NCBI RefSeq assembly: GCF_003704095.1
Contig: NW_020846063.1
Coordinates: forward strand, 1,178,001-1,242,000
Direction of reading: 5' to 3'
Length of the DNA: 64,000 bases
From: Pocillopora damicornis
Taxonomy: Eukaryota
The notes beneath the pieces were generated by a model. The model saw only the letters and a list, made by a program, of their open reading frames with translations. It made no database searches and was not told the DNA's origin. Positions 31,683 to 46,801 of this stretch are shown piece after piece. Every line of letters begins with the position of its first letter. Within the stretch, counting starts at the first letter, position 1. Made by a program: the position numbers and the translations under genes.

Positions 31683-34600
31683 ATGGCGGACAAAACAGAT
31701 ACCAATGAACAGGCAGAAGGTTCTTTACCTGCAAAAAGCACACCAAAAGATGCCTTGGTCATGGCTGCCATTCTAAAAGAGATGGGAATCAGCGAATACG
31801 AGCCAAGAGTTATCAACCAAATGCTAGAATACACATACCGTGAGTTTAAACTGTCACTAACATTTTCAGATGTGATCCACTTCAGGGACAAGGGCATCTG
31901 TTTCTATTGATATATTTTTTGTTCAATTTAAGCAATGTTGAATTGAAATAGTGGTGGCAAAAGTGTCATAGCTAATTTTTTACCTTAAACTCAGGATCTG
32001 ATTAATAATTATCCTGTCAACTTTTACACCTTTCGTTGTACATCAACTAAAAGGATTTGGTTTCAGATCAAAATTATACTCTCTTTTTTATACTTTGGTC
32101 AACCATTATGATCTTTTTTTTTAGGATAATGTGACTCGATTGTGAGAATGAGCTGCAGTTTGCTCATTCTCGGTAGTTTTCAGTGTCGCTTTTGTAGGGT
32201 CATAAATTATTTTCATGAATTTAAGTGGAACTTTAATATAAAGTGGACACAAGTTAGAGACAAAATATTTTGAATCTGCCTACAGGTTACATTACAACAG
32301 TGTTAGAGGATGCTATGGTTTACAGTAAACATGCTGGCAAGAAAGATCTTGATGCAGAAGATGTGCAGTTAGCCATCCAGTCCAGACTGGACCATTCTTA
32401 TACTAATCCTCCACCTAGAGAGGTATGTTTTGAGATGCACAGCTCATTCTGTTCCTGTTTCCTTTTTTTGAGTACAAGATGTAAGAGACCTACACCATAG
32501 CTGCTTATTTCACTATATCTTTGCCAAAATATAACATTCCATGGATACTCTCTATTAGGGGTGGGGAGGATGTACATGTGAAGTTATGAATTAAAATTTT
32601 GTGTTCCTAGCAAAAATATTACACCTTAAAAAAGTTTTTGTCAAACATTAAACAAAGAAACAACACTTTTTGTGTACTATGTGCCCCCACCTTTTTTTTC
32701 ATGACATTTTTCCCTTTTTCCAATCTCCTATTAAGCAAGTCCTAAAGTTGTGTACCTCTGCGGAACTGCACTCATAAATGTTAACCTTCAAATTCCAGAT
32801 ACTTTTAAAACATCTTCAAGTCTGTCAGGAAGGGAATTCCCATCCTCATCCATATTTTGGCGGTCTTAAATTGTGTCAGTAGTTGTCATTCAGGATGCAC
32901 TAAATAGACTGATACATCAGAAGGGAGTCACCATGAAACTGCTTAGGCCTTCATCCAGCTTATCTCTTAGCATAAATGTTAGGGTCCTTAGCACTTATCA
33001 TAACTTTTTACCCCTCTATCTAAGGAAAGTTACATAAGTTATATTAATTTCTCTTATCAGTTTCTGATTGAGATTGCACGGCAGAAGAATCGACACCCTT
33101 TACCTCAGATTCAGACAAAGAGTGGTTTACGGCTACCACCTGACCGCTATTGTCTCACCTCAACAAACTACAAAGTCAAGACACAGAAAAAGGTGATGAA
33201 GAAAGTTTTCACTCTTTTACTCCCAGATCAAATTTGTAATTCCCTTTACTGTCAACCATACAATTCTTATAATGTTAGTTCAGAGAATTTAGAATTGGAT
33301 CAACTAATTATCCCCACATTGATCTCATTCTTTATTCTCATCACTTATCTGGTTGATAAATTGTATAAATACTGTAAGGAGAAATTCTGTTTTGGTCACT
33401 CGCAGGAGTTAAAGGCTTAATGAAACAGGGTTCCTTATGTGCCTGCACTAAGTCAAGTCTGCTTCTGAAATTTGTGGCTTGTATTGTGGAAGATTATGTG
33501 GGTTTGCAGAGCCTGAAACGACTAAAAGTATTGCCATTCCTACCTGGATAGGATGCTAGTTCCAATGACAGATTACCTAATAGCATTTCATCAAATTTCT
33601 TTGGCAGTTTTCAGGTACCCAGTTCCGCCCAAGACACAATGCAATGATCTGGTCTGGTGTCTAACATGGACATTTCAATCCCGAGTCTATCAGGCTAACC
33701 AGTGTTAATACATTGTGTCCCTGTGCTCTGACCAATGCCTCTAAAATTACTTGTTTTATCTTTTAGCAGCATGCTCAGGTTCGTGCCAATCCAGTTGTAG
33801 CTCGAACAATCTCTCAGTCAGCTGTATCAACACTCATAAAACCAACACCAGCAACTATTGTCACAGTCAAAATGCCAACTGCTGCTCCAGTCACAGCATC
33901 TGCAGGACCTGCAGCAAATACTGCAACAGCTGTCACAGCTGGTGTAGCGGTAAAAAAGGAACCAACGGGGACCACTGTGGTACAGAAACAGGCAACAGTG
34001 GCTACAGGAACCCCAGCAATACAGGTGTGATGTTCTATAACCAGACATTATTTTTACTGTAGCTACCTACCTACCAGGAAACTTGTTGCTTGGACAAATT
34101 ACACTGATGGTTTTCCCTGTAACACATACTCATTTAGATGGAAAACTTATTTCACAATGACTGAATTGTTACCATAGTTCTTCAGTCTCACATTGTTTGC
34201 AGTGCCATTACAAACTGTTATGTCAAAAAATTCAAATGAACCTACAATGTGCATCAAAACTCTCAAATGGGCCATGTGTGCCAACTGTACAATGAAATTT
34301 AGTATTTATTATTGAACAGTTGCCACATTATTAAGAAAATTTGGTAAAAATGACTGTCCATGATTAAAAAAATAAAAATTTTGGTCGAATTTGAATCTAA
34401 TCTGATGTGCTTATAGTATATCCTTTCTTATGCTAAAATGCTTCCATAATTGGCTTTTTCAGCAAATACTTCTAACCATCAGTAAACTGTTTCTGGCTCT
34501 TTGTCTCACATCCTTCAGCTTATGCAGGGCATAAACTAACAAGGTAATTTGGTATTATCAACATAGTTGATATCATAAATTGGTCACCCTAAAGAGTTTC

Positions 34601-35135
34601 AAAGCTTGACATTTTGAGTGTTAGCCCTTTGCCAGAGAGAATGGAGGAATTGTGGGTTGTGTGTTTTCCTCTATTTGCTCTGACAAAGGGCTAATGCTTG
34701 AAATGCCAGCTTTGAAACTCTTTATTGTGGCCAATTTACGTCATCAACTCAGTTGACGATACTAAATTACCCTGATACACTCTCCCACAGAGGCAGCACC
34801 ACAGTTTCTTTAGAAACCTACCCCCTTTATTGATAAACTCAAAAGCTAACCAGACAAGTTGTAAGATATATTTGATGATGTCAGGAAAATCCAACAAAAT
34901 TATTTGTGTTTCTCTTCAGGTGAAAATTGAACCAGGAGTGACTGTCACTAAAAGTCAGCCTATCGCAGGTGTACCAGCTGCAGCTAAAGCCTCTCAAAGT
35001 ACAGGCAACCCAGCTTCAATGCTCACAGTGTCAGCGCTTCCAAGCATGGATGAAACAGTTGCCAGCACCCAGCAACCATTGATAACTCCACTTAAGCGAA
35101 AACATGAAGATGAAGATGATGATTATGACACATAA
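31683..35135 (+). CDS. TAF9: TFIID subunit 9 (histone-fold TAF9), about 299 aa, 5 exons
   Basis: Exons 31683-31839, 32286-32422, 33061-33192, 33767-34024, 34920-35135 (900 nt). Motifs [51 protein letters not shown], and C-terminal [14 protein letters not shown]. Confidence 0.95.
33207..33420. mobile_element. Degenerate copy of the TTAA MITE family
   Basis: Starts ttcactcttttactcccagatc, ends gagttaaaggcttaa; about 210 bp. Confidence 0.6.
34543..34831. repeat. Palindromic repeat with about 97-bp inverted arms, each containing a decayed minimal hammerhead-like core (Penelope/retrozyme-type relic)
   Basis: Arms about 34543-34640 and 34675-34771 are imperfect reverse complements. Right arm reads CTGACAA-AGGGCTAATGCTT-GAAA. 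Adjacent gcagcaccacagtttctt motif recurs inverted at about 27000 and 50450. Confidence 0.6.
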
Positions 35136-36084: not shown

Positions 36085-37254
36085 TTAAAATATTGCCACC
36101 AGTAACAATGCTGCCACAATGGTAACTAGTATGAACAAAATCCACCCCCAAGATTTCCAGGGATTTTCTTCTTTCTTGGGATCCAACTCTGTGGAAGTTG
36201 TCCTTTCCTTGGCATCAAAATGACAAGGAGTCTTCCCTTTTGAAGGATCCAATTTCGAGGATTTGGTGACGACCCGTTCTATGCCCCTGTATCTCCAGTT
36301 CTGAGCCCAACTGTTGTGTCTGAGAATTCTTAGACCTGCGCGACGGGCAACCTCCTTACACACCCTGCATCTTTGCCCCCGTCGTCTGAGTTCCGACGAC
36401 CAGAACTCATCTCTTGGAAACAACCTATGACAGCAGGTGCATGCTGTATCAGCTCGGGGAAAATAAACATTTCCTTTATCAGGTATGATGTTAAGAGGAA
36501 GAAGTGCATTCTTCTCGTATTCGTCAAAATACCTTTTGGTTTTACATCGAACGAAATCAGCGTATCTCTCGGATGCTATTCGTAGGCGAATCTGATCAGC
36601 ACCTTGTAAGATACCCTTCAACTTGTCGTACAAACTGAACATGGCCAATGTATCAACAATACAATATTGTATTAACTCATTTGACAAAGGTCTCTTCTTC
36701 CATATTTCTTCATCATTCTTCAACAAAAACCTTCCCTCATCCTTCATTTTGATTAAATTTTCATCACCGACGTACAGCTCAAGGCAGCGACGAAAACCGA
36801 AAATGCTCTCCACTTGATCATTTGGTCTTTGATTACGATGAGAGTGGCCCGCACCGAAGAAGGTCTGACCAGTCGCTGAGTCGTTTTCACGACGGTAGAG
36901 GATTTCAAGGAGCTGCAAATCCAAAATACCTGTCAGTCTTACGTTAAACTGATGCCAGAGAGCATCTGAATCCTCTCGGCAATCAAACATCAGCTTCGTG
37001 CACGACTTGTCTTCAAGGATTTGACTCAGTCCACCACTGAATGTAAACTTTCCCAACTTATAGACATCAAATATGTAGACTTCTTCCTCAGTTGCGACTG
37101 CTATAATTGTAAGTGCTCCATGTCTACTCAAAGAAACTCCTTCACAATCAACAGCTATAAACCGTGAGCTATTATGTTCTAATTTCCGTTTGAGGTTATA
37201 AATAGCATCCTTCAAACTTCTCTGTTCATCGACAACTTTGTAGTAATTTTTCAT
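36085..37254 (-). CDS. EXD1/Egalitarian-like DEDDy 3'-5' exonuclease with C4 zinc finger and C-terminal transmembrane helix (copy 1, 389 aa, intronless)
   Basis: ExoI AVDCEG (D36,E38), ExoII FDCREDSDAL (D95), WKKRPL, ExoIII YCIVDT (Y197,D201); C272-x2-C-x20-C-x2-C299; hydrophobic end WGWILFILVTIVAALLLVAIF. Confidence 0.85.
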   Translation of the reverse strand: MKNYYKVVDEQRSLKDAIYNLKRKLEHNSSRFIAVDCEGVSLSRHGALTIIAVATEEEVYIFDVYKLGKFTFSGGLSQILEDKSCTKLMFDCREDSDALWHQFNVRLTGILDLQLLEILYRRENDSATGQTFFGAGHSHRNQRPNDQVESIFGFRRCLELYVGDENLIKMKDEGRFLLKNDEEIWKKRPLSNELIQYCIVDTLAMFSLYDKLKGILQGADQIRLRIASERYADFVRCKTKRYFDEYEKNALLPLNIIPDKGNVYFPRADTACTCCHRLFPRDEFWSSELRRRGQRCRVCKEVARRAGLRILRHNSWAQNWRYRGIERVVTKSSKLDPSKGKTPCHFDAKERTTSTELDPKKEENPWKSWGWILFILVTIVAALLLVAIF

Positions 37255-37390
37255 CTTGCTTGTCGTTCACGATTTCCACTCAAGCAAAAAGGTTGCTGCC
37301 TACCTTCTTTGAGACCTTATTTTTAGGTTTAGAGCGAATCCGAGCTTTCTTGAAACCACTTCGTCGAGTGAACGAGTTTCAAGAATTCAT

Positions 37391-37412
37391 CAGTTTCCAC
37401 TTTCACTTCCGG
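37391..37412 (-). promoter_or_regulatory. Ets-IRF composite / ISRE-like motif upstream of exonuclease copy 1
   Basis: Minus strand CCGGAAGTGAAAGTGGAAACTG contains GGAAnnGAAA, about 140 bp upstream of the ATG. Further GAAAGTGAAA at 37632-37641 and AAAGTGAAAG at 37750-37759. Confidence 0.45.
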
Positions 37413-38699
37413 CGGCCATTTTTCTTTTGTTTACATTGGGGAGGAGGGGGTTGGGAGCTTGCAGGAAGAAGGATGCTCTCAATATTAACAAAAAGGTGCA
37501 GAGATTGTCGTTAAAGAATGGCCTTACACTTGGGTCATATGATAAGAAGCAAAGTGTTGTAGTTTGGATCTACTGCAGAATATCGTGGTGCCTTGATTGA
37601 TGCTGGGTGTGGAGCAGAATTACATGGAGTTGAAAGTGAAATTTTGCCATGTCTAAACTCAAACAGAATATGAAACAGAATTCTACCCGTTGATTTTGAA
37701 GATGTCAATCTGTCTCTACTGTGCATTTTGAGTTGTAATTATGAATGTTAAAGTGAAAGGAGTCCAGCATGGTCTAACTCCCCTATTTTCAAACTAAAAC
37801 GCCTGTTGAACCTCAAGGGAATGCATTGACCTTGACGAGACATACCCATCTACTTGGGTTCTTGCACTAAGTAAAAACGCGATGTGCATACATAAGGCGG
37901 ATGAACAAGGCAGAATACTTACTAACATTCATTTCTATGTGCAGACGACATAATTACTAATAACTAAACATTTCATATGACCGCAAATCACAACAAGCGA
38001 AACAAATGCTACCAGGCTTTATCAAGTACAGGTCATTTATTTTTTTACCCCAAAATCAAACGCCATTTCATTGTTTTGGTTATCATGATTGATGACATTT
38101 GAGATACCTTAGAAAAATTATCGCCATATCTATGAGACCTACAAATATAATCGTATGTTTCAAGCTTTATACAGTACTTTCTGGATATTTGCATTTTTAG
38201 GCGAGGCAACAAATTTGAACCACCGCGCAAGTCACCTTCCCTTAGAGGCAGTCATCGGCAGTCACTACTATTTATGGAGATTATTCATATAACTGAAAAG
38301 CTCACACTAATTATAGAAATTATTCGTGTTCATTCGGAAACGCGCAATCCAAAAAAATGGGATATAATATAGAAACCATAAAACTAGCGACCCTTTACTA
38401 ACTAAGAGCGTAATCGATTTGTCTGACTTCAATAAAAAACATCGAAACATGCCAAGCTCGAGTCTCTAAGCGAGCGCTTGACTGACTTCGTGTGAACAGC
38501 GGTTTTAAAAAATGCTACCGACGGGAATGCTTAAATTCATTGTGAAGACAAGTTCTAGTATTCGATTCTTCAGTACAATTTTCTTATTTATGATTTAAAG
38601 ATATTTAAGTTAGTTCTTCCTGATAATTATAAAAATTAATTATACGCTTAATTTACCTTTTCGCTAGAAGTAGAAGAACCAAAAATAACAATAACATAA

Positions 38700-39645
38700 C
38701 TACACACGATAAAGAAAGTCATCCTGGCTATTCGCTTCTCTCTTTCGTCGTACATCTGCTCGGCGTTTTATTTCCTTACATACCCTGCACTTCTGCTCAT
38801 TATTCTTTAGTTGTGTTTTGGTGAACTCTTCTCGTGGAAATAGTCTCTTGCAACGAGTACATTTAGTGTCAGCAGGCGGAAAAGAAAGAGTTCCTTCGTC
38901 CGGGATGATGTCGAGTGGAAGCAATGCATTGGTTTCGAAATCGTCGAAAGATCTTGTCGTTTTGTTTCGATACAGATCAACATACTTCTCGGAGGCAACG
39001 CGTAGACGAGCCCCCTCTCTTTCTTCCACATCTTTCATATTCTCGTACAATCGGAACATCGCCATTGTATCTACGATGCAGTACTGAATTAACTTATCAG
39101 GTAGAGGCCTTTTCTCCCACACTTCAGTGTCCCTCTTTAACAATTTACTTCCTTCATCCTTCATCTTAAGCAAATCTTCATCCTTTAGATACAGCTCGAG
39201 GCAGCGACGAAAACCATAAATGCTTTCAACTTCATCTGTTCTCTGGCTTCGAGTTTTATGCTTAGTGCGGGAAAGCTCAAGCTCAAAGGATTTCAAGCAA
39301 CTGAAGATCCAACACTCCCGTTAGCCTGACATTCAACTGATGCCAGAGTGCATCTGAATCTTGCCGACAATCAAACATCAGCTTCGTACATGACTCGTTG
39401 TCCAGGATTTCACGAAGTCCACTTCGGACTGTCGCGCGTTTTCCCAGCTCCAAAACATCAAATATGTAGACTTTCTCCTCAGTAGCAACTGTTATTATAG
39501 TAAGTGTACCTTTTCTGCTGAGATCAACACCTTCACAATCAACCGCTAAGAGTGCGTTATGCTCTATTTTCTGTCTGAGTTCGGATATGGCGACTTTGAG
39601 ACCAGGATCGTTATTAACCAGTTTATAATCATACTTGCTGGCCAT
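38700..39645 (-). pseudogene. EXD1/Egl-like exonuclease with C4 zinc finger (copy 2), split by one frameshift: pseudogene, assembly error or recoded gene
   Basis: 39645-39283 encodes ExoI and ExoII up to DLQLLEIL*. The +1 frame continues FELELSRTKHKTRSQRTDEVESIYGFRRCLELY..YCIVDT..CTRC..CRVC to 38700. The linker is 26 nt shorter than in copy 3, and there are no other disablements. Confidence 0.75.
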
Positions 39646-40516
39646 TCTGTTTGGTTTTACATAAGCAAAGCATTGATTTTTTCCTAAGCTTAATCAACAA
39701 AACTGCCAATTGTGCATTCGTATAAAGTGTTCATTAATATTAATGAGTTCTTGGAACTCCACCTTTGTTTCTCATTGGTCAGCTTTGTCCGGCCTTGTTT
39801 TCTCACTCCACCCCTGCAGCGTTCTGCCAAATGCGTCTTTGATGGGGGTGGGGTAACTAGGTAAAACACGTTCACTACGGTTTAGTGAAGAGACAAATTA
39901 TAAGAAATCAAGAGGTTGACTCTATAGCCCTCGATGTGTTTAATCATACGCCTTAAGAAAAACTTGAGCTGAGGAAAGATACCGAGGGCTCAAACTCATT
40001 CCCTCTTGCAGTAAGTACAATGATCATTGGTGATATTTCTTGGTAAAATGTTCTCCCGTTTTAAAAATGTTCATAAACAGGCCAAACGTTATTAACAGCT
40101 AGTGGGCCGGTTACGTATTTTCAAAGCAAGAATTTGTAGAATCAATAATACACAACGGGCCAGGTCAAGTGCCGCGAGCCCTAAGGAGTCTCTTTTCTCC
40201 TGTGATTTGCTTTCTAACAGCCGTCCTTTTTGGAAGGGATACTTTCCGTCTTTGCTGTCAGGTATGAGCTTTGTTTAAACTAAAAATTCAAATGAGCCGA
40301 TGAAAGGATTGTCTCTGATCCTCTGTCACTCAGAAGCTATCTGTCATATTCAATGGCCATCAGGAGAAGGGAGAGGAGGGAGGAATCACAATCAGCGGAA
40401 ATGAATATTATTTTCTCAGAACTCATGACTCGAGAGGTTCCAAGAAAGCTGTCGTACTCTCCTTTCGCAAGACGGGCTTTCATCAAATCAGGGCAAAAAT
40501 TCAAGTGAAATCAAGA

Positions 40517-41563
40517 ATGGCGTGCAAGATCTCAAGTGATTTCAGACTGATCGACGATGAAGCTGGTCTCGAAGATGCTCTTCATGAGCTTAAACGAGAA
40601 ATTATCGATAACTCTCGCTTTATAGCTGTTGATTGTGAAGGTGTTAACCTGAGCAGGAAGGGAGCGCTCACCATCATAACAGTCGCAACGGAAGATAAAG
40701 TCTACATATTCGATGTTCTCAAACTACAGCAAGCAGTTTTTTCCTTTGGCTTTGGCGAAATCCTGGAAGATAAATCGATTGGGAAGCTGATGTTTGATTG
40801 TCGGGAAGATTCAGACGCCCTGTGGCATCAATTTAACATAAAATTGACGGGAGTGTTGGATCTTCAGCTGCTTGAAATCCTCTACCGCCGTGAGAATGAC
40901 ACAGCTACTCGCCACGAACCTTCTAGCGCAGGGTACACACGTCGGAGCCACAGACCCTACGAAGTAGAGAGCATCTATGGTTTTCGTCGCTGTCTTGAGC
41001 TGTACGTTCAGGATGATGAATTGATCAAGATGAAAAATGAGGGAAAAATTCTTATGAAGAAAGACTATGGAGTTTGGAAAAAAAGACCCTTATCGGATGA
41101 ATTGATGGAATACTGCATCGTGGATACAACGGCGATGTTCAAGTTGTACGAGAAGATGAAAGATGTAAAAGAAAGAGAAGAGGCTCGTCTCCGAGTGGCA
41201 TCTGAGAAATACGCTGATCTCTATCGGCAGAAATCCGTGAGGTCCTTTGATGATTACGATATGAATGCGTTGCTTCCACTCGATATAATCCCAGAGAAAG
41301 GGAAACTTTATTTTCCGCACGCCAATACCGAATGTATCAAATGTTTGCGACGGTTTCCACGAGAGGAATTCAGTAATACGCAGCTAAGAAACGGAGAGCC
41401 GAAATGCAGGGTGTGCAAGGAGATAAAGCTGAAAGAAGACGAAGAGAGGAGCAGAGACATCCGAGACTTTCATAAGTTCCTCCGTTTTGAAGTCTTTTCT
41501 CGATATAGCGACGATGATTTTATCTGTGGCGATAGCGACGACGAATACTCAGTCTACTGGTAA
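40517..41563 (+). CDS. EXD1/Egl-like DEDDy exonuclease with C4 zinc finger and acidic tail (copy 3, 348 aa from ATG 40517, intronless CDS)
   Basis: AVDCEG, FDCREDSDAL, WKKRPL, YCIVDT; CIKC..FPREEFSNTQL..CRVC at 41333-41416; ends DDDFICGDSDDEYSVYW*. The ORF-track start at 40505 is a GTG; the first ATG is 40517. Confidence 0.88.
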   Translation: MACKISSDFRLIDDEAGLEDALHELKREIIDNSRFIAVDCEGVNLSRKGALTIITVATEDKVYIFDVLKLQQAVFSFGFGEILEDKSIGKLMFDCREDSDALWHQFNIKLTGVLDLQLLEILYRRENDTATRHEPSSAGYTRRSHRPYEVESIYGFRRCLELYVQDDELIKMKNEGKILMKKDYGVWKKRPLSDELMEYCIVDTTAMFKLYEKMKDVKEREEARLRVASEKYADLYRQKSVRSFDDYDMNALLPLDIIPEKGKLYFPHANTECIKCLRRFPREEFSNTQLRNGEPKCRVCKEIKLKEDEERSRDIRDFHKFLRFEVFSRYSDDDFICGDSDDEYSVYW

Positions 41564-44269: not shown

Positions 44270-46801
44270 TCATTCATACTGGTATTCTTCAATCCTTTTT
44301 AGTTGCCGAGTCCTTGAGCGTTTAGCATTCTCAGCCGCTACTGCACGTGCGCTACTTGTGGTGAAAAAATCCCCTGGTTTGGATGCATTGCTCACCGGAG
44401 CATCAGGGAGTGGGGATGACTGTCCTTCAGCGACGACAAGGCGTACTTCATCCACTCTCTGGGAAACCGTATTCTTAATGACGGGTGTGAGTTGTAATAG
44501 GGTCAGATAACCAGTGATCTGTGCCAGTCGCATCACGGATACAGAGTCATCAGCGGTTCTCAAGTGTTCCACAGACTCTACAAACAGACGGCGCCGCATG
44601 CGTTCCGATGCCAAGGGACAGATGTTATCGATAGCTTCAGCATATTCAATATCGGTCATAAACCCAGGCCTCCTTCCTGGTTGTTGCAGCAGTTTAACTT
44701 CCATTTCTTGAAAGCGAGGTTCTCTGTACTTCAGAATGATGTACAGGAAATACTCGGACACCAGTTCTTTAGAAATCTTGTTTTCGCTGAAGGAGGTGTA
44801 GCCCATTGAGAACTGCTCAATGTCTTCCTCATTCATGAAGGGATAAACAACTTGAGCAAAAATCCTGATGTCTTTGACGGCCAACCACTCAACCAGATCG
44901 ATAAACTCATTTATCAAAAGGATGTAACGAACCACAACTGGGTCCAAGCTGCCACACATCGCCTGAGCAAACAACTGAATGTTCTTGTTGCCCGAGGCAA
45001 ACTTGATCACACTTGTGAAGAAATCAAACACAGCTAGAAATGTGACATCTGGAACAAGATATCGTTCGTGGAAGAAAGAGTACAGCGTATCCACAACTGA
45101 AACAATTTGTTCATCTTCCACTGCGTAATCATCCTGCCAGATAAGTGAAGAGTAAAACTGCTCAATGATGGACGATACACGATCCTGAGAAAGAGCCCTT
45201 GGTATCTGTCTTCTAATTGATGTCCTTGAGTAGTAATCATCCCAGAGGAACTTGTATGTCGTGGTCAGGTGTTGTTGTTCTTTCAAGATGGACTCTTCTC
45301 CGTAAGTTACAGTGCTGTTTGAAATCGCCGACATCGCTCGGACGCTCTCGGGAGTTTCGGTTACAAGAACAGGAGGTTTTTCCTCACGTGATATGTGCAC
45401 TGTTGGCCTGATGATCTTTATGTGGGTACAGTTATGAGGCAATGAAACAACCTTGTGATCTGTAACTTTGTGAGGACAGAGTAGAGTTGTCTCACCACAA
45501 CTTGCACAAAACTTGGCATCTTTAAACTCGTGATAGTTCTTTCCCTGGTTGCAGGAGTAGTACATCATTGCTGAGTACTTGCTCAGGATTCTTTCGTGTG
45601 AAATAAATGGATCTTGATTATGTGCACTGTTCATGATCTTCACAAAGTCAATCTCGTCATCGTCTTCAGGTGTATCTGGTTTCCTTTCCTTTTCTCCTTC
45701 CATGAAAAACATGCTTTTCTTTCTCTCTTTCTTTTCGTTGGTTTCTCTTTCTATCCTCTTAGCTTCCTCCTCAAGTTCGGCCAACTGATCTTCAAGACTA
45801 GACCTTTGAATCTCAATGAGCTGAAATTCGTTTTCAATATCAGCAATACTCTTTTTAAATCTTTCCTTGACTTTGTGCAGCTCCTCTTCCAGTTTCACTC
45901 TCATTTCGTGTTCATCATCTGGTGTTGCACGAAAGTTACTTCCACTGCTCTTCAAGTCAACTTCTTCTGTTGGCAAAGCCTTATTCTCCTCCAAGAAGAG
46001 TTCATATTCCTCAATAACTAAATTCTGCATGGTAAGGAGTTGCTCTTCCAGAAGCTTAGCATTAGATATTTCTTGAATGAGTTGAGCTCTCCTTGTTAGA
46101 ACAGCTGGTTTTTGAGGCTTATTATCGAACACTGTTGAATCATTAAATGCTTCTTCAAGGGCGTCATAACCTTCTTTAAACTTTTCAAGGAATTTGTTCC
46201 TTTCCTTAGCTTGAGTGAGATCCTCTTTAAGACCTGAAATGCGTTTTTCGTAACGGTCTTTAGCCGCTTGTTGCATCATCTGTTCATATTGGACGCTTGT
46301 TTCAAGTTTCCTCTGCTCGAGATTCTGGTTTTCCATTTCGATTTCCATGTTGTAAATCTTATCACTGCACTCTTTAAGTGATTTTTTAAGTTGCTCGATG
46401 GTTTTATTAGCCTCTTCCAATTGTTGATCTTTCTCAGCAAGTTTGTTTTCTAATGCATTAATGGCTTCTTTTAGCTGGTCTGCGTTTTTATCGCGTTCCT
46501 CAAAAACTCGATTAACAAGTACGAAATAAGGAATGCGTTGAATATAAGTCGTCTTGCTTTTCCCTTTTTTAGGTGTTGCTGTAGTGTATTCATTGCTATA
46601 CACAGCTTCGTATAGTTCATCCCGAAGCATCTTCAAAACTTTCTTATAAACTCCCAACTCTGGAATTAGTTCATCATAGACATGAAAACATGTTGTCATC
46701 CGTTCTTCGGAAAGTCCTTTCTTTGGCGTATCTTCGACAAGAAGGACTTCATACCTCGTGGCAGGTGACCTAGATGATAAAGCTCTTCTTTCAAAATCCA
46801 T
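44270..46801 (-). CDS. Intronless 843-aa coiled-coil protein, possibly TSNAXIP1-like / cilia-associated
   Basis: 2.5-kb open frame with long heptad regions. N-terminal CFHVYDELIPELGVYKKVLKMLRDELY and later LYSFFHERY..IQLFAQAMCGSLD segments resemble TSNAXIP1-family patterns as I recall them (unverified). CASCGETTLLCPH motif at 45508-45470. Confidence 0.8.
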   Translation of the reverse strand: MDFERRALSSRSPATRYEVLLVEDTPKKGLSEERMTTCFHVYDELIPELGVYKKVLKMLRDELYEAVYSNEYTTATPKKGKSKTTYIQRIPYFVLVNRVFEERDKNADQLKEAINALENKLAEKDQQLEEANKTIEQLKKSLKECSDKIYNMEIEMENQNLEQRKLETSVQYEQMMQQAAKDRYEKRISGLKEDLTQAKERNKFLEKFKEGYDALEEAFNDSTVFDNKPQKPAVLTRRAQLIQEISNAKLLEEQLLTMQNLVIEEYELFLEENKALPTEEVDLKSSGSNFRATPDDEHEMRVKLEEELHKVKERFKKSIADIENEFQLIEIQRSSLEDQLAELEEEAKRIERETNEKKERKKSMFFMEGEKERKPDTPEDDDEIDFVKIMNSAHNQDPFISHERILSKYSAMMYYSCNQGKNYHEFKDAKFCASCGETTLLCPHKVTDHKVVSLPHNCTHIKIIRPTVHISREEKPPVLVTETPESVRAMSAISNSTVTYGEESILKEQQHLTTTYKFLWDDYYSRTSIRRQIPRALSQDRVSSIIEQFYSSLIWQDDYAVEDEQIVSVVDTLYSFFHERYLVPDVTFLAVFDFFTSVIKFASGNKNIQLFAQAMCGSLDPVVVRYILLINEFIDLVEWLAVKDIRIFAQVVYPFMNEEDIEQFSMGYTSFSENKISKELVSEYFLYIILKYREPRFQEMEVKLLQQPGRRPGFMTDIEYAEAIDNICPLASERMRRRLFVESVEHLRTADDSVSVMRLAQITGYLTLLQLTPVIKNTVSQRVDEVRLVVAEGQSSPLPDAPVSNASKPGDFFTTSSARAVAAENAKRSRTRQLKRIEEYQYE

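Follow-up and report, generated by a model that had tools for sequence, protein, structure and literature searches.

A tandem cluster of exonuclease–zinc-finger genes related to EXD1 and Egalitarian in the coral Pocillopora damicornis

Results

Three intronless exonuclease–finger genes at one locus

The DNA analysed here, referred to throughout as the window, is a stretch of 64,000 nt of Pocillopora damicornis from contig NW_020846063.1, and its positions 36085–41563 hold a cluster of three paralogous genes (A, B and C) for a DEDDy-type 3′–5′ exonuclease (Exo) domain followed by a zinc finger with four cysteines (C4 finger). A sequence-only reading of the window (the original prediction) had proposed three paralogs in minus, minus, plus orientation, and the open reading frames (ORFs) indeed lie in this interval on these strands. 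The features of the cluster, in window coordinates, are:

36085–37254, minus strand: gene A, intact, 389 amino acids (aa), with DEDDy exonuclease, C4 finger and predicted C-terminal tail anchor (ORF, PF01612 match and motifs)
37138–37149, minus strand: D36/E38 of ExoI in gene A (motif inspection)
36958–36984, minus strand: ExoII of gene A (motif inspection)
36652–36666, minus strand: YCIVD motif (ExoIII) of gene A (motif inspection)
36358–36441, minus strand: C-x2-C-x20-C-x2-C zinc finger of gene A (motif inspection; Cys conservation in 78 family members)
36088–36150, minus strand: predicted tail anchor of gene A, 21 hydrophobic residues closing the protein (sequence; similar end in P0112)
38700–39645, minus strand: gene B, a transcribed pseudogene (120-aa ORF at 39283–39645 and 198-aa ORF at 38700–39296)
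38778–38861, minus strand: finger of gene B (motif inspection)
39283–39285, minus strand: premature TGA of gene B at the junction of a 26-nt deletion (comparison with A, C and intact B alleles)
39646–40516, no strand: spacer between the divergently transcribed genes B and C, presumed to be a shared promoter region
40517–41563, plus strand: gene C, intact, 348 aa, with exonuclease, C4 finger and an acidic aromatic tail ending in W
41333–41416, plus strand: finger of gene C (motif inspection)

The mechanical ORF of gene C opens at a GTG at 40505 and would encode 352 aa; translation most likely begins instead at the 40517 ATG, since the called orthologs are 348 aa long. The three proteins share 56–68% identity. 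All three genes are covered by polyA RNA contigs, which come from three studies and run collinear with the genome, so that the coding regions are intronless, and the gene calls on an identical public scaffold place small-exon housekeeping genes on both sides (Med4 and TAF9 on one; RPL35A, next to an 843-aa ORF, on the other), as had been claimed for the setting of the cluster. No terminal repeats surround it: the sole repeats between 33 and 45 kb are the coding regions themselves. The RNA contigs extend to ~39703–39716 on the B side of the spacer and start at ~40437–40460 on the C side, and the part of the spacer at ~40011–40392, fully covered by a DNA run, has no RNA contig in X15 or X17 and a single contig of depth 2.5 in X18 only.

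Complete active site, C4 finger and fold

PF01612 (3′–5′ exonuclease) matches A, B and C with E 1e-18 to 1e-19 (gene A, E 1.4e-18), the two ORF pieces of B having been searched separately and never joined. The scores for A and C (67.7–70.2 bits) exceed the gathering cut-off of 23.6 bits, as do those of 78/78 members of a family alignment of diverse sequences with 26–68% identity to C. Every motif named in the original prediction was found: D-x-E of ExoI (as D-C-E-G), D of ExoII within DCR(E/Q)DSDAL, Y-x3-D of ExoIII within YCIVD, the NALLPL(D/N)IIP linker and the C4 finger are present in all copies, together with W.KRPL. The five catalytic residues (D and E of ExoI, D of ExoII, Y and D of ExoIII) are all present in A and C, and in B are split over two frames. 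Numbered along gene C from the GTG at 40505, E45, D102, Y203, C277, C301 and C304 are invariant in the 78 members, and D43, D207 and C280 are conserved in ≥90%; all four cysteines of the finger are thus invariant or nearly so.

Each protein has the order Exo domain, helical linker, one C4 finger, long helix and paralog-specific tail. The Exo domain opens at residue ~6–14, leaving room for nothing of domain size N-terminal to it; no Lsm domain was matched there, and the RNA contigs stop only ~60–170 nt upstream of the start codons. The AlphaFold2 model of C reached pLDDT 90.4 and pTM 0.86, and its best Foldseek matches were EXD1 (top), Trypanosoma brucei RNase D (TbRND) and Egalitarian (Egl) at E 1e-12, followed by Rrp6 at 1e-8 to 1e-9.

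Placement among known nucleases

We built a profile from the 78 members and searched it against solved structures. EXD1 is the best match of the single sequence C (E 6e-17; profile 3e-29), and Egl is the best match of the profile (1e-37; single sequence 2e-15); TbRND (7C42/7C45, identified in PMC7797062) follows with 3e-12 for the single sequence and 1e-33 for the profile. Rrp6 and Nibbler match more weakly with the single sequence and at ~1e-13 with the profile, and WRN and EXD2 reach 2.5e-10 and 1e-6 with the profile. The proposed assignment to the EXD1/Egl-like branch of DEDDy nucleases therefore holds, since sequence, profile and Foldseek searches all give EXD1, Egl and TbRND as nearest. 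In the printed profile alignments, where the five residues of the family line up with the catalytic positions of TbRND, both TbRND and Egl retain D, E, D, Y and D; in Bombyx EXD1, three of these sites are occupied by S, D and L. The degenerate active site of EXD1 was not found in the coral family; that the active-site residues are kept here, unlike in EXD1 (PMC4712191), agrees with the original prediction.

Other nuclease genes of the genome were noted in passing. Further PF01612 genes at C2721:641341–646180 and C2640:420566–421039 (L007–L009; frames of 192, 392 and 659 aa, two in tandem on C2721) look WRN-type by eye, with long low-complexity N-terminal regions, and an intronless 604-aa PARN-like gene at C2824:283365–284537 (L031) has a full CAF1 domain and no membrane anchor; it was the sole gene resolved when PNLDC1 was looked for in this genome.

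Paralog-specific tails

As predicted, the C-termini are unrelated: A ends in a putative membrane anchor, B has just a short tail, and the tail of C is acidic and aromatic with a final W. Gene A closes with an unbroken run of 21 hydrophobic residues (369–389), and a similar hydrophobic end is found in P0112, the syntenic ortholog of another coral; this terminus suggests that A is most likely tail-anchored to a membrane. Gene C and an unlinked fourth copy of the genome, D, have acidic tails rich in Trp and Tyr. In a set of 100 coral members, Trp accounts for 8.5% of the tail residues beyond the finger and for 0.7% of those in the rest of the protein (12-fold enrichment), occurring mostly in PWE, NWE and terminal YW or WW contexts; 43 of the 100 proteins end in W, and the tails consist of 29% Asp plus Glu and are nearly Lys-free. 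Because acidic tails with Tyr, Trp or Phe also occur in many divergent non-coral members, we infer that the tail type of C is ancestral and that the anchor of A and the short tail of B are derived. Argonaute-hook-like, kinesin-light-chain-type, adaptor-ear or nucleic-acid-mimic roles are all conceivable for Trp-acidic tails. For the proposal that the paralogs are sent to different compartments, only the conserved predicted tail anchor of A offers a recognisable targeting signal; the other tails contain none.

The finger and its likeness to Stc1

PF12898 (Stc1) is weakly matched by B and C and by 16/78 members at E≤0.01. The best scores, 20.1 bits for B and 21.4 bits in a genome scan, stay below the 24.8-bit gathering cut-off, and the matches, which include four Cys ligands, are confined to positions 50–83 of the 84-position model. 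Folded alone, the linker–finger–helix module gave pLDDT 87.4, and a Foldseek search of it against the PDB ranked Stc1 (2LUY) 1st of 350,542 chains, but weakly so (E 0.37, probability 0.63, 45 columns); VIA-align returned nothing above Z 3.2 for the same module. We regard the resemblance, which is weak and below threshold, as a possible lead and not as membership. A zf-CCHC match was found in 1/78 members.

Gene B is a transcribed pseudogene in this genome

Gene B lacks 26 nt that A, C and intact B alleles possess; the deletion falls between window positions 39285 and 39284, just after the codons for LQLLEIL, shifts the frame and produces the TGA at 39283–39285 that splits B into ORFs of 120 aa and 198 aa. 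An independent Tara Pacific scaffold has the same lesion, as does a DNA run of another study, and this recurrence excludes an assembly error as the cause of the break. One sample yielded both a DNA run that contains this sequence and a polyA RNA contig that spans the deletion without any difference from the genome; the broken allele is thus transcribed and unspliced. A short intron at this site is excluded as well, since the RNA contig matches the genome across it and no GT..AG fits.

Intact alleles of B exist elsewhere in the genus. RNA contigs of two other studies, 95–99% identical, have 26 additional bases at the site, and three other Pocillopora scaffolds encode an intact 323-aa B (P0041/P0317), 98% identical over the part that aligns to the 198-aa piece of the window. 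In the Tara scaffold (L001:8621–8720, ~window 39285) an N gap with ~55 nt duplicated on either side lies exactly at the deletion site, which suggests that the assembler met two alleles there.

Allele states and polymorphism in Pocillopora

We compared six haplotypes, the window and five scaffolds (L025–L029) that are ~99% identical to it and come from metagenome assemblies with uncertain species assignment. Gene A is intact in 6/6. Gene B has lost its 5′ half, along with part of the B–C spacer, through a ~885-nt deletion in L025 and L026; as this deletion has the same breakpoint as the 26-nt deletion, the two lesions may be nested and not independent. Gene C is intact in the window, L025, L026 and L028, and frameshifted in L027 (+4, −1) and L029 (−5, −1), the latter two having an identical 1-nt loss in an A7 run.

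The polymorphism counts are small but differ between the genes: gene A has 2 nonsynonymous and 5 synonymous differences (pN/pS 0.11, p=0.006 against neutral), gene B has 14 and 5 (pN/pS 0.77, not different from neutral), and gene C has 17 and 1 (pN/pS 4.4, p=0.09 against neutral); the patterns of A and C differ with p=0.002. Positive selection on C was considered and rejected as an explanation: its ratio is not significantly different from neutral, the counts include pseudogene alleles, and its dN/dS between genera is 0.19. Gene A is the only copy under clear constraint and the working member in this genome; gene C, judged from these sequences, is a fast-evolving, dispensable member in Pocillopora. 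The original prediction of three working nucleases therefore fails, since B is present here as a transcribed pseudogene, two related haplotypes have a broken C, and A alone is consistently intact and constrained. Separately, other Pocillopora lineages lack 9 nt, in frame, at 41458–41467 in the acidic tail of C.

An old cluster with a wide family

Another scleractinian assembly has four paralogs at the same place, in the order 843-aa gene, C-like gene on the opposite strand, B-like gene, an extra copy, A-like gene with the hydrophobic end, then TAF9 and Med4. Comparison of the two corals gives dN/dS values of 0.22 for A, 0.16 for B and 0.19 for C at dS 0.8–1.2; A, B and C have thus long been maintained as coding genes. 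Coral genomes contain many paralogs of the family apiece, which supports the lineage expansion suggested in the original prediction.

In the whole P. damicornis genome (234 Mb, 4393 contigs) there are only four copies of the family, the fourth being D, which lies on contig C3843, is intact and encodes 363 aa; a member of its 90% cluster is named from P. verrucosa. A tree of 129 sequences, which does not include canonical EXD1, Egl or TbRND, places D in a large clade that evolves slowly and shares a conserved IPEGMSDYAW...EPWE...YW tail, with proteins named from Acropora, Montipora, Orbicella, Oculina and Desmophyllum; A, B and C fall in a small, faster clade with the paralogs of the other coral. 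Representatives at 26–45% identity include proteins named from Argopecten, Mya and Mytilus. The exonuclease plus C4 finger arrangement is present in about half of the best 150 representatives, and such relatives occur in bivalves and in many unnamed divergent clusters; a protein atlas adds feature-similar PF01612 clusters in echinoderms and Basidiomycota. The architecture is thus not confined to corals.

These results also bear on whether the genes are unexpressed transposon cargo, a possibility that the original prediction had itself named. Transposon cargo is rejected on the grounds of the mere four copies in this genome, the lack of terminal repeats around the cluster and the synteny in another coral, and the RNA contigs contradict lack of expression.

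Further observations at the locus

One low-depth RNA contig skips 391 nt at 36913–37303, with GT..AG ends on the minus strand; the skip would remove the start codon and first 114 codons of A, but its shorter side is just 28 nt, which makes the support weak. An RNA contig of another lineage skips 510 nt at 37864–38373, downstream of the B stop, with non-canonical ends, and this is probably an indel difference between lineages and not an intron. Upstream of the cluster lies a 70-nt inverted repeat (34537–34606 and 34708–34777) whose arms are 81% complementary and 101 nt apart.

The intronless 843-aa ORF (44270–46801, minus strand) has no Pfam match, and its N-terminal half appears coiled-coil-rich by eye; in all Pocillopora haplotypes, and in the other coral as well, it adjoins the cluster. 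P0303 is 99.5% identical to it. A cluster look-up that grouped A with this neighbour was discarded, because BLAST finds no similarity between the two, and the size of that look-up cluster was ignored.

Discussion

A conserved cluster of probable RNA exonucleases

Our analysis suggests that the locus is probably best explained as an old, positionally conserved tandem cluster of RNase D-like DEDDy 3′–5′ exonucleases, assisted by their fingers and with tails that set location or partner. By analogy with characterised relatives, the proteins are most likely active 3′–5′ exoribonucleases on single-stranded RNA ends: the Exo domain with its complete two-metal active site would trim the 3′ ends of single-stranded RNA, as TbRND does; the linker and finger would help to hold the RNA or a partner, as the zinc-finger domain of TbRND might lead one to expect; and the tail would determine location or partner, with A membrane-anchored and C and D carrying acidic Trp/Tyr-rich tails. 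Within the cluster of this genome, A would be the working copy kept under constraint and C a dispensable one, and B is a pseudogene that is still transcribed.

Several points weigh against this account. Conserved residues do not prove catalysis, because Egl keeps the same five in the printed profile alignment although they are dispensable for its function (PMC13186709). The RNA-binding role of the finger is an analogy only, because TbRND has four CCHC knuckles and the coral proteins a single C4 module. In Pocillopora, B and C have alleles with broken frames and near-neutral polymorphism, and so are dispensable now. Finally, the RNA evidence used throughout consists of assembled contigs, which report presence and not expression level, strand or tissue.

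The retention of the five residues by Egl without need for them (PMC13186709), and the fact that neither of the two nearest animal relatives acts by catalysis (PMC4712191, PMC13186709), are what would favour reading the family as non-catalytic RNA-binding adaptors like EXD1 and Egl, in which the fold holds RNA and the acidic residues are kept for binding or stability. We think this unlikely, though it deserves to be weighed: the five residues are invariant or ≥90% conserved over the 78 members whereas EXD1 has lost its own, the family lacks the partner-binding domains (Lsm in EXD1, LOTUS-like in Egl) that make those proteins adaptors, and its nearest active relative, TbRND, aligns over nearly the full length. 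A role in DNA repair or replication, as for the WRN exonuclease domain or EXD2, is considerably harder to maintain; the Pfam family is the same and WRN and EXD2 are matched, but relatives that act on or bind RNA match better by at least 20 orders of magnitude, and the genome has separate WRN-like and EXD2-like genes. The least probable of the readings that we considered is that the genes are transposon cargo or decaying duplicates without distinct roles. The lack of introns, the broken B, the two broken haplotypes of C and the near-neutral polymorphism of B and C would all be in keeping with it, but the genome holds only four copies without terminal repeats, another coral has the same neighbours, dN/dS between genera is 0.16–0.22, and A is clearly constrained. 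Decay may hold for B and C within Pocillopora only, and for the cluster as a whole it is largely refuted.

It is also conceivable that the proteins are nucleases of a small-RNA pathway that dock on Argonaute or PIWI proteins through the Stc1-like finger or the Trp-acidic tail and trim or clear small-RNA-related 3′ ends; this would be a specific version of the exonuclease account and does not exclude it, and A would then act on a membrane in the manner of the pre-piRNA trimmer PNLDC1. We hold it to be doubtful, to about the degree of the adaptor reading. The enrichment of Trp in the coral tails, the weak Stc1 signal that recurs among the members and heads the fold search, and the status of EXD1 as a piRNA factor point towards it; the Stc1 match, on the other hand, lies below the Pfam cut-off and covers half of the model only, the fold match is weak in Foldseek and has no counterpart in VIA-align, and the Trp-acidic motifs would equally fit the kinesin-light-chain, adaptor-ear and nucleic-acid-mimic types of tail. 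In fission yeast, Stc1 links the Ago1-containing RITS to the CLRC methyltransferase complex (PMC8490990). A link to small RNAs or defence, as suggested in the original prediction, is accordingly a minority reading that would draw on the kinship with EXD1, the Stc1 signal and the tail composition only. More speculative, and less probable again, is a wider scenario in which the lineage behind EXD1 and Egl survives in catalytically active form as this family, a zinc-finger-guided 3′–5′ exoribonuclease that would dock on Argonaute or PIWI proteins through the Stc1-like finger or the Trp-acidic tail and include a trimmer-like, membrane-tethered A, and in which the segregating null alleles of B and C would reflect conflict with transposons or viruses.

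EXD1 and Egl have been studied as nuclease-fold proteins that act without catalysis, and our results place close relatives with a full active site and a finger in corals and bivalves. NCBI names the coral members 'piRNA biogenesis protein EXD1-like', a label that is misleading and reflects similarity only, because the defining features of EXD1 are absent; a coral stress transcriptome paper used the Exd1 annotation to discuss transposon control (PMC6385260). The cluster further offers one constrained copy with a predicted tail anchor beside copies with natural null alleles in wild Pocillopora, which could be used for a phenotype search.

Comparison with known systems

EXD1 of mouse and Bombyx (PDB 5FIQ/5FIS) is the best single-sequence match and the top Foldseek match. 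It is an inactive protein that has lost its DEDD residues (SDLN or AELE in their place), carries an N-terminal Lsm domain for binding TDRD12, and forms dimers through a C-terminal helical hook (PMC4712191). In the coral proteins, by contrast, there is no N-terminal domain, the DEDDy site is intact, and the region after the Exo domain consists of linker, C4 finger and helix. Drosophila Egl (PDB 9RVY and others) is the best profile match and shares the five residues and the motifs. In Egl, three LOTUS-like domains precede the Exo domain and a tetrahelical XAD follows it; there is no zinc site, and the catalytic residues are dispensable (PMC13186709). The alignment of Egl with the profile breaks off at the end of the Exo domain (position 221), where the coral family has four conserved Cys instead of the XAD, and the LOTUS-like domains and BicD-binding region are absent, there being no sequence N-terminal to the Exo domain to hold them. 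The sequences place the family in the same subgroup as Egl, EXD1 and TbRND, yet it has the defining features of neither EXD1 nor Egl.

Two further systems resemble parts of the coral proteins. PNLDC1, a 3′–5′ exonuclease, sits on a membrane through a transmembrane helix at its C-terminus, as A appears to do. The likeness is one of analogy only; PNLDC1 belongs to the CAF1/PARN family with a DEDDh site. The second half of the Stc1 model from S. pombe (PF12898, 2LUY) fits the C-x2-C...F(S/T)..Q...C-x2-C pattern of the coral finger, but Stc1 has tandem fingers with eight ligands, compared with four in the coral proteins, and no nuclease domain.

The closest architectural counterpart is TbRND (PDB 7C42–7C4C), with a DEDDy Exo domain bearing FDCR.D..AL and W..RPL motifs, followed by a linker and C-terminal zinc-binding modules. 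The family profile aligned to it over positions 23–320, through the linker and into the zinc-finger region (first fingers), and the folds superpose with an rmsd of 3.6–4.4 over ~255 columns. TbRND is an active enzyme whose zinc-finger domain improves both the binding and the cleavage of RNA (PMC7797062). It differs in having four CCHC knuckles and a mitochondrial presequence and in trimming the U-tails of guide RNAs, whereas in the coral proteins a single C4 finger is followed by a long helix and an acidic or membrane tail. The original prediction had known of no description of this architecture. Our search of the literature on EXD1-like proteins, Stc1-domain exonucleases and EXD1 in corals and cnidarians found no paper that characterises the family, and in this the prediction stands, but TbRND is a characterised precedent (PMC7797062). 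The coral genes are an uncharacterised form of a known enzyme type, with an architectural precedent in TbRND and a wide distribution.

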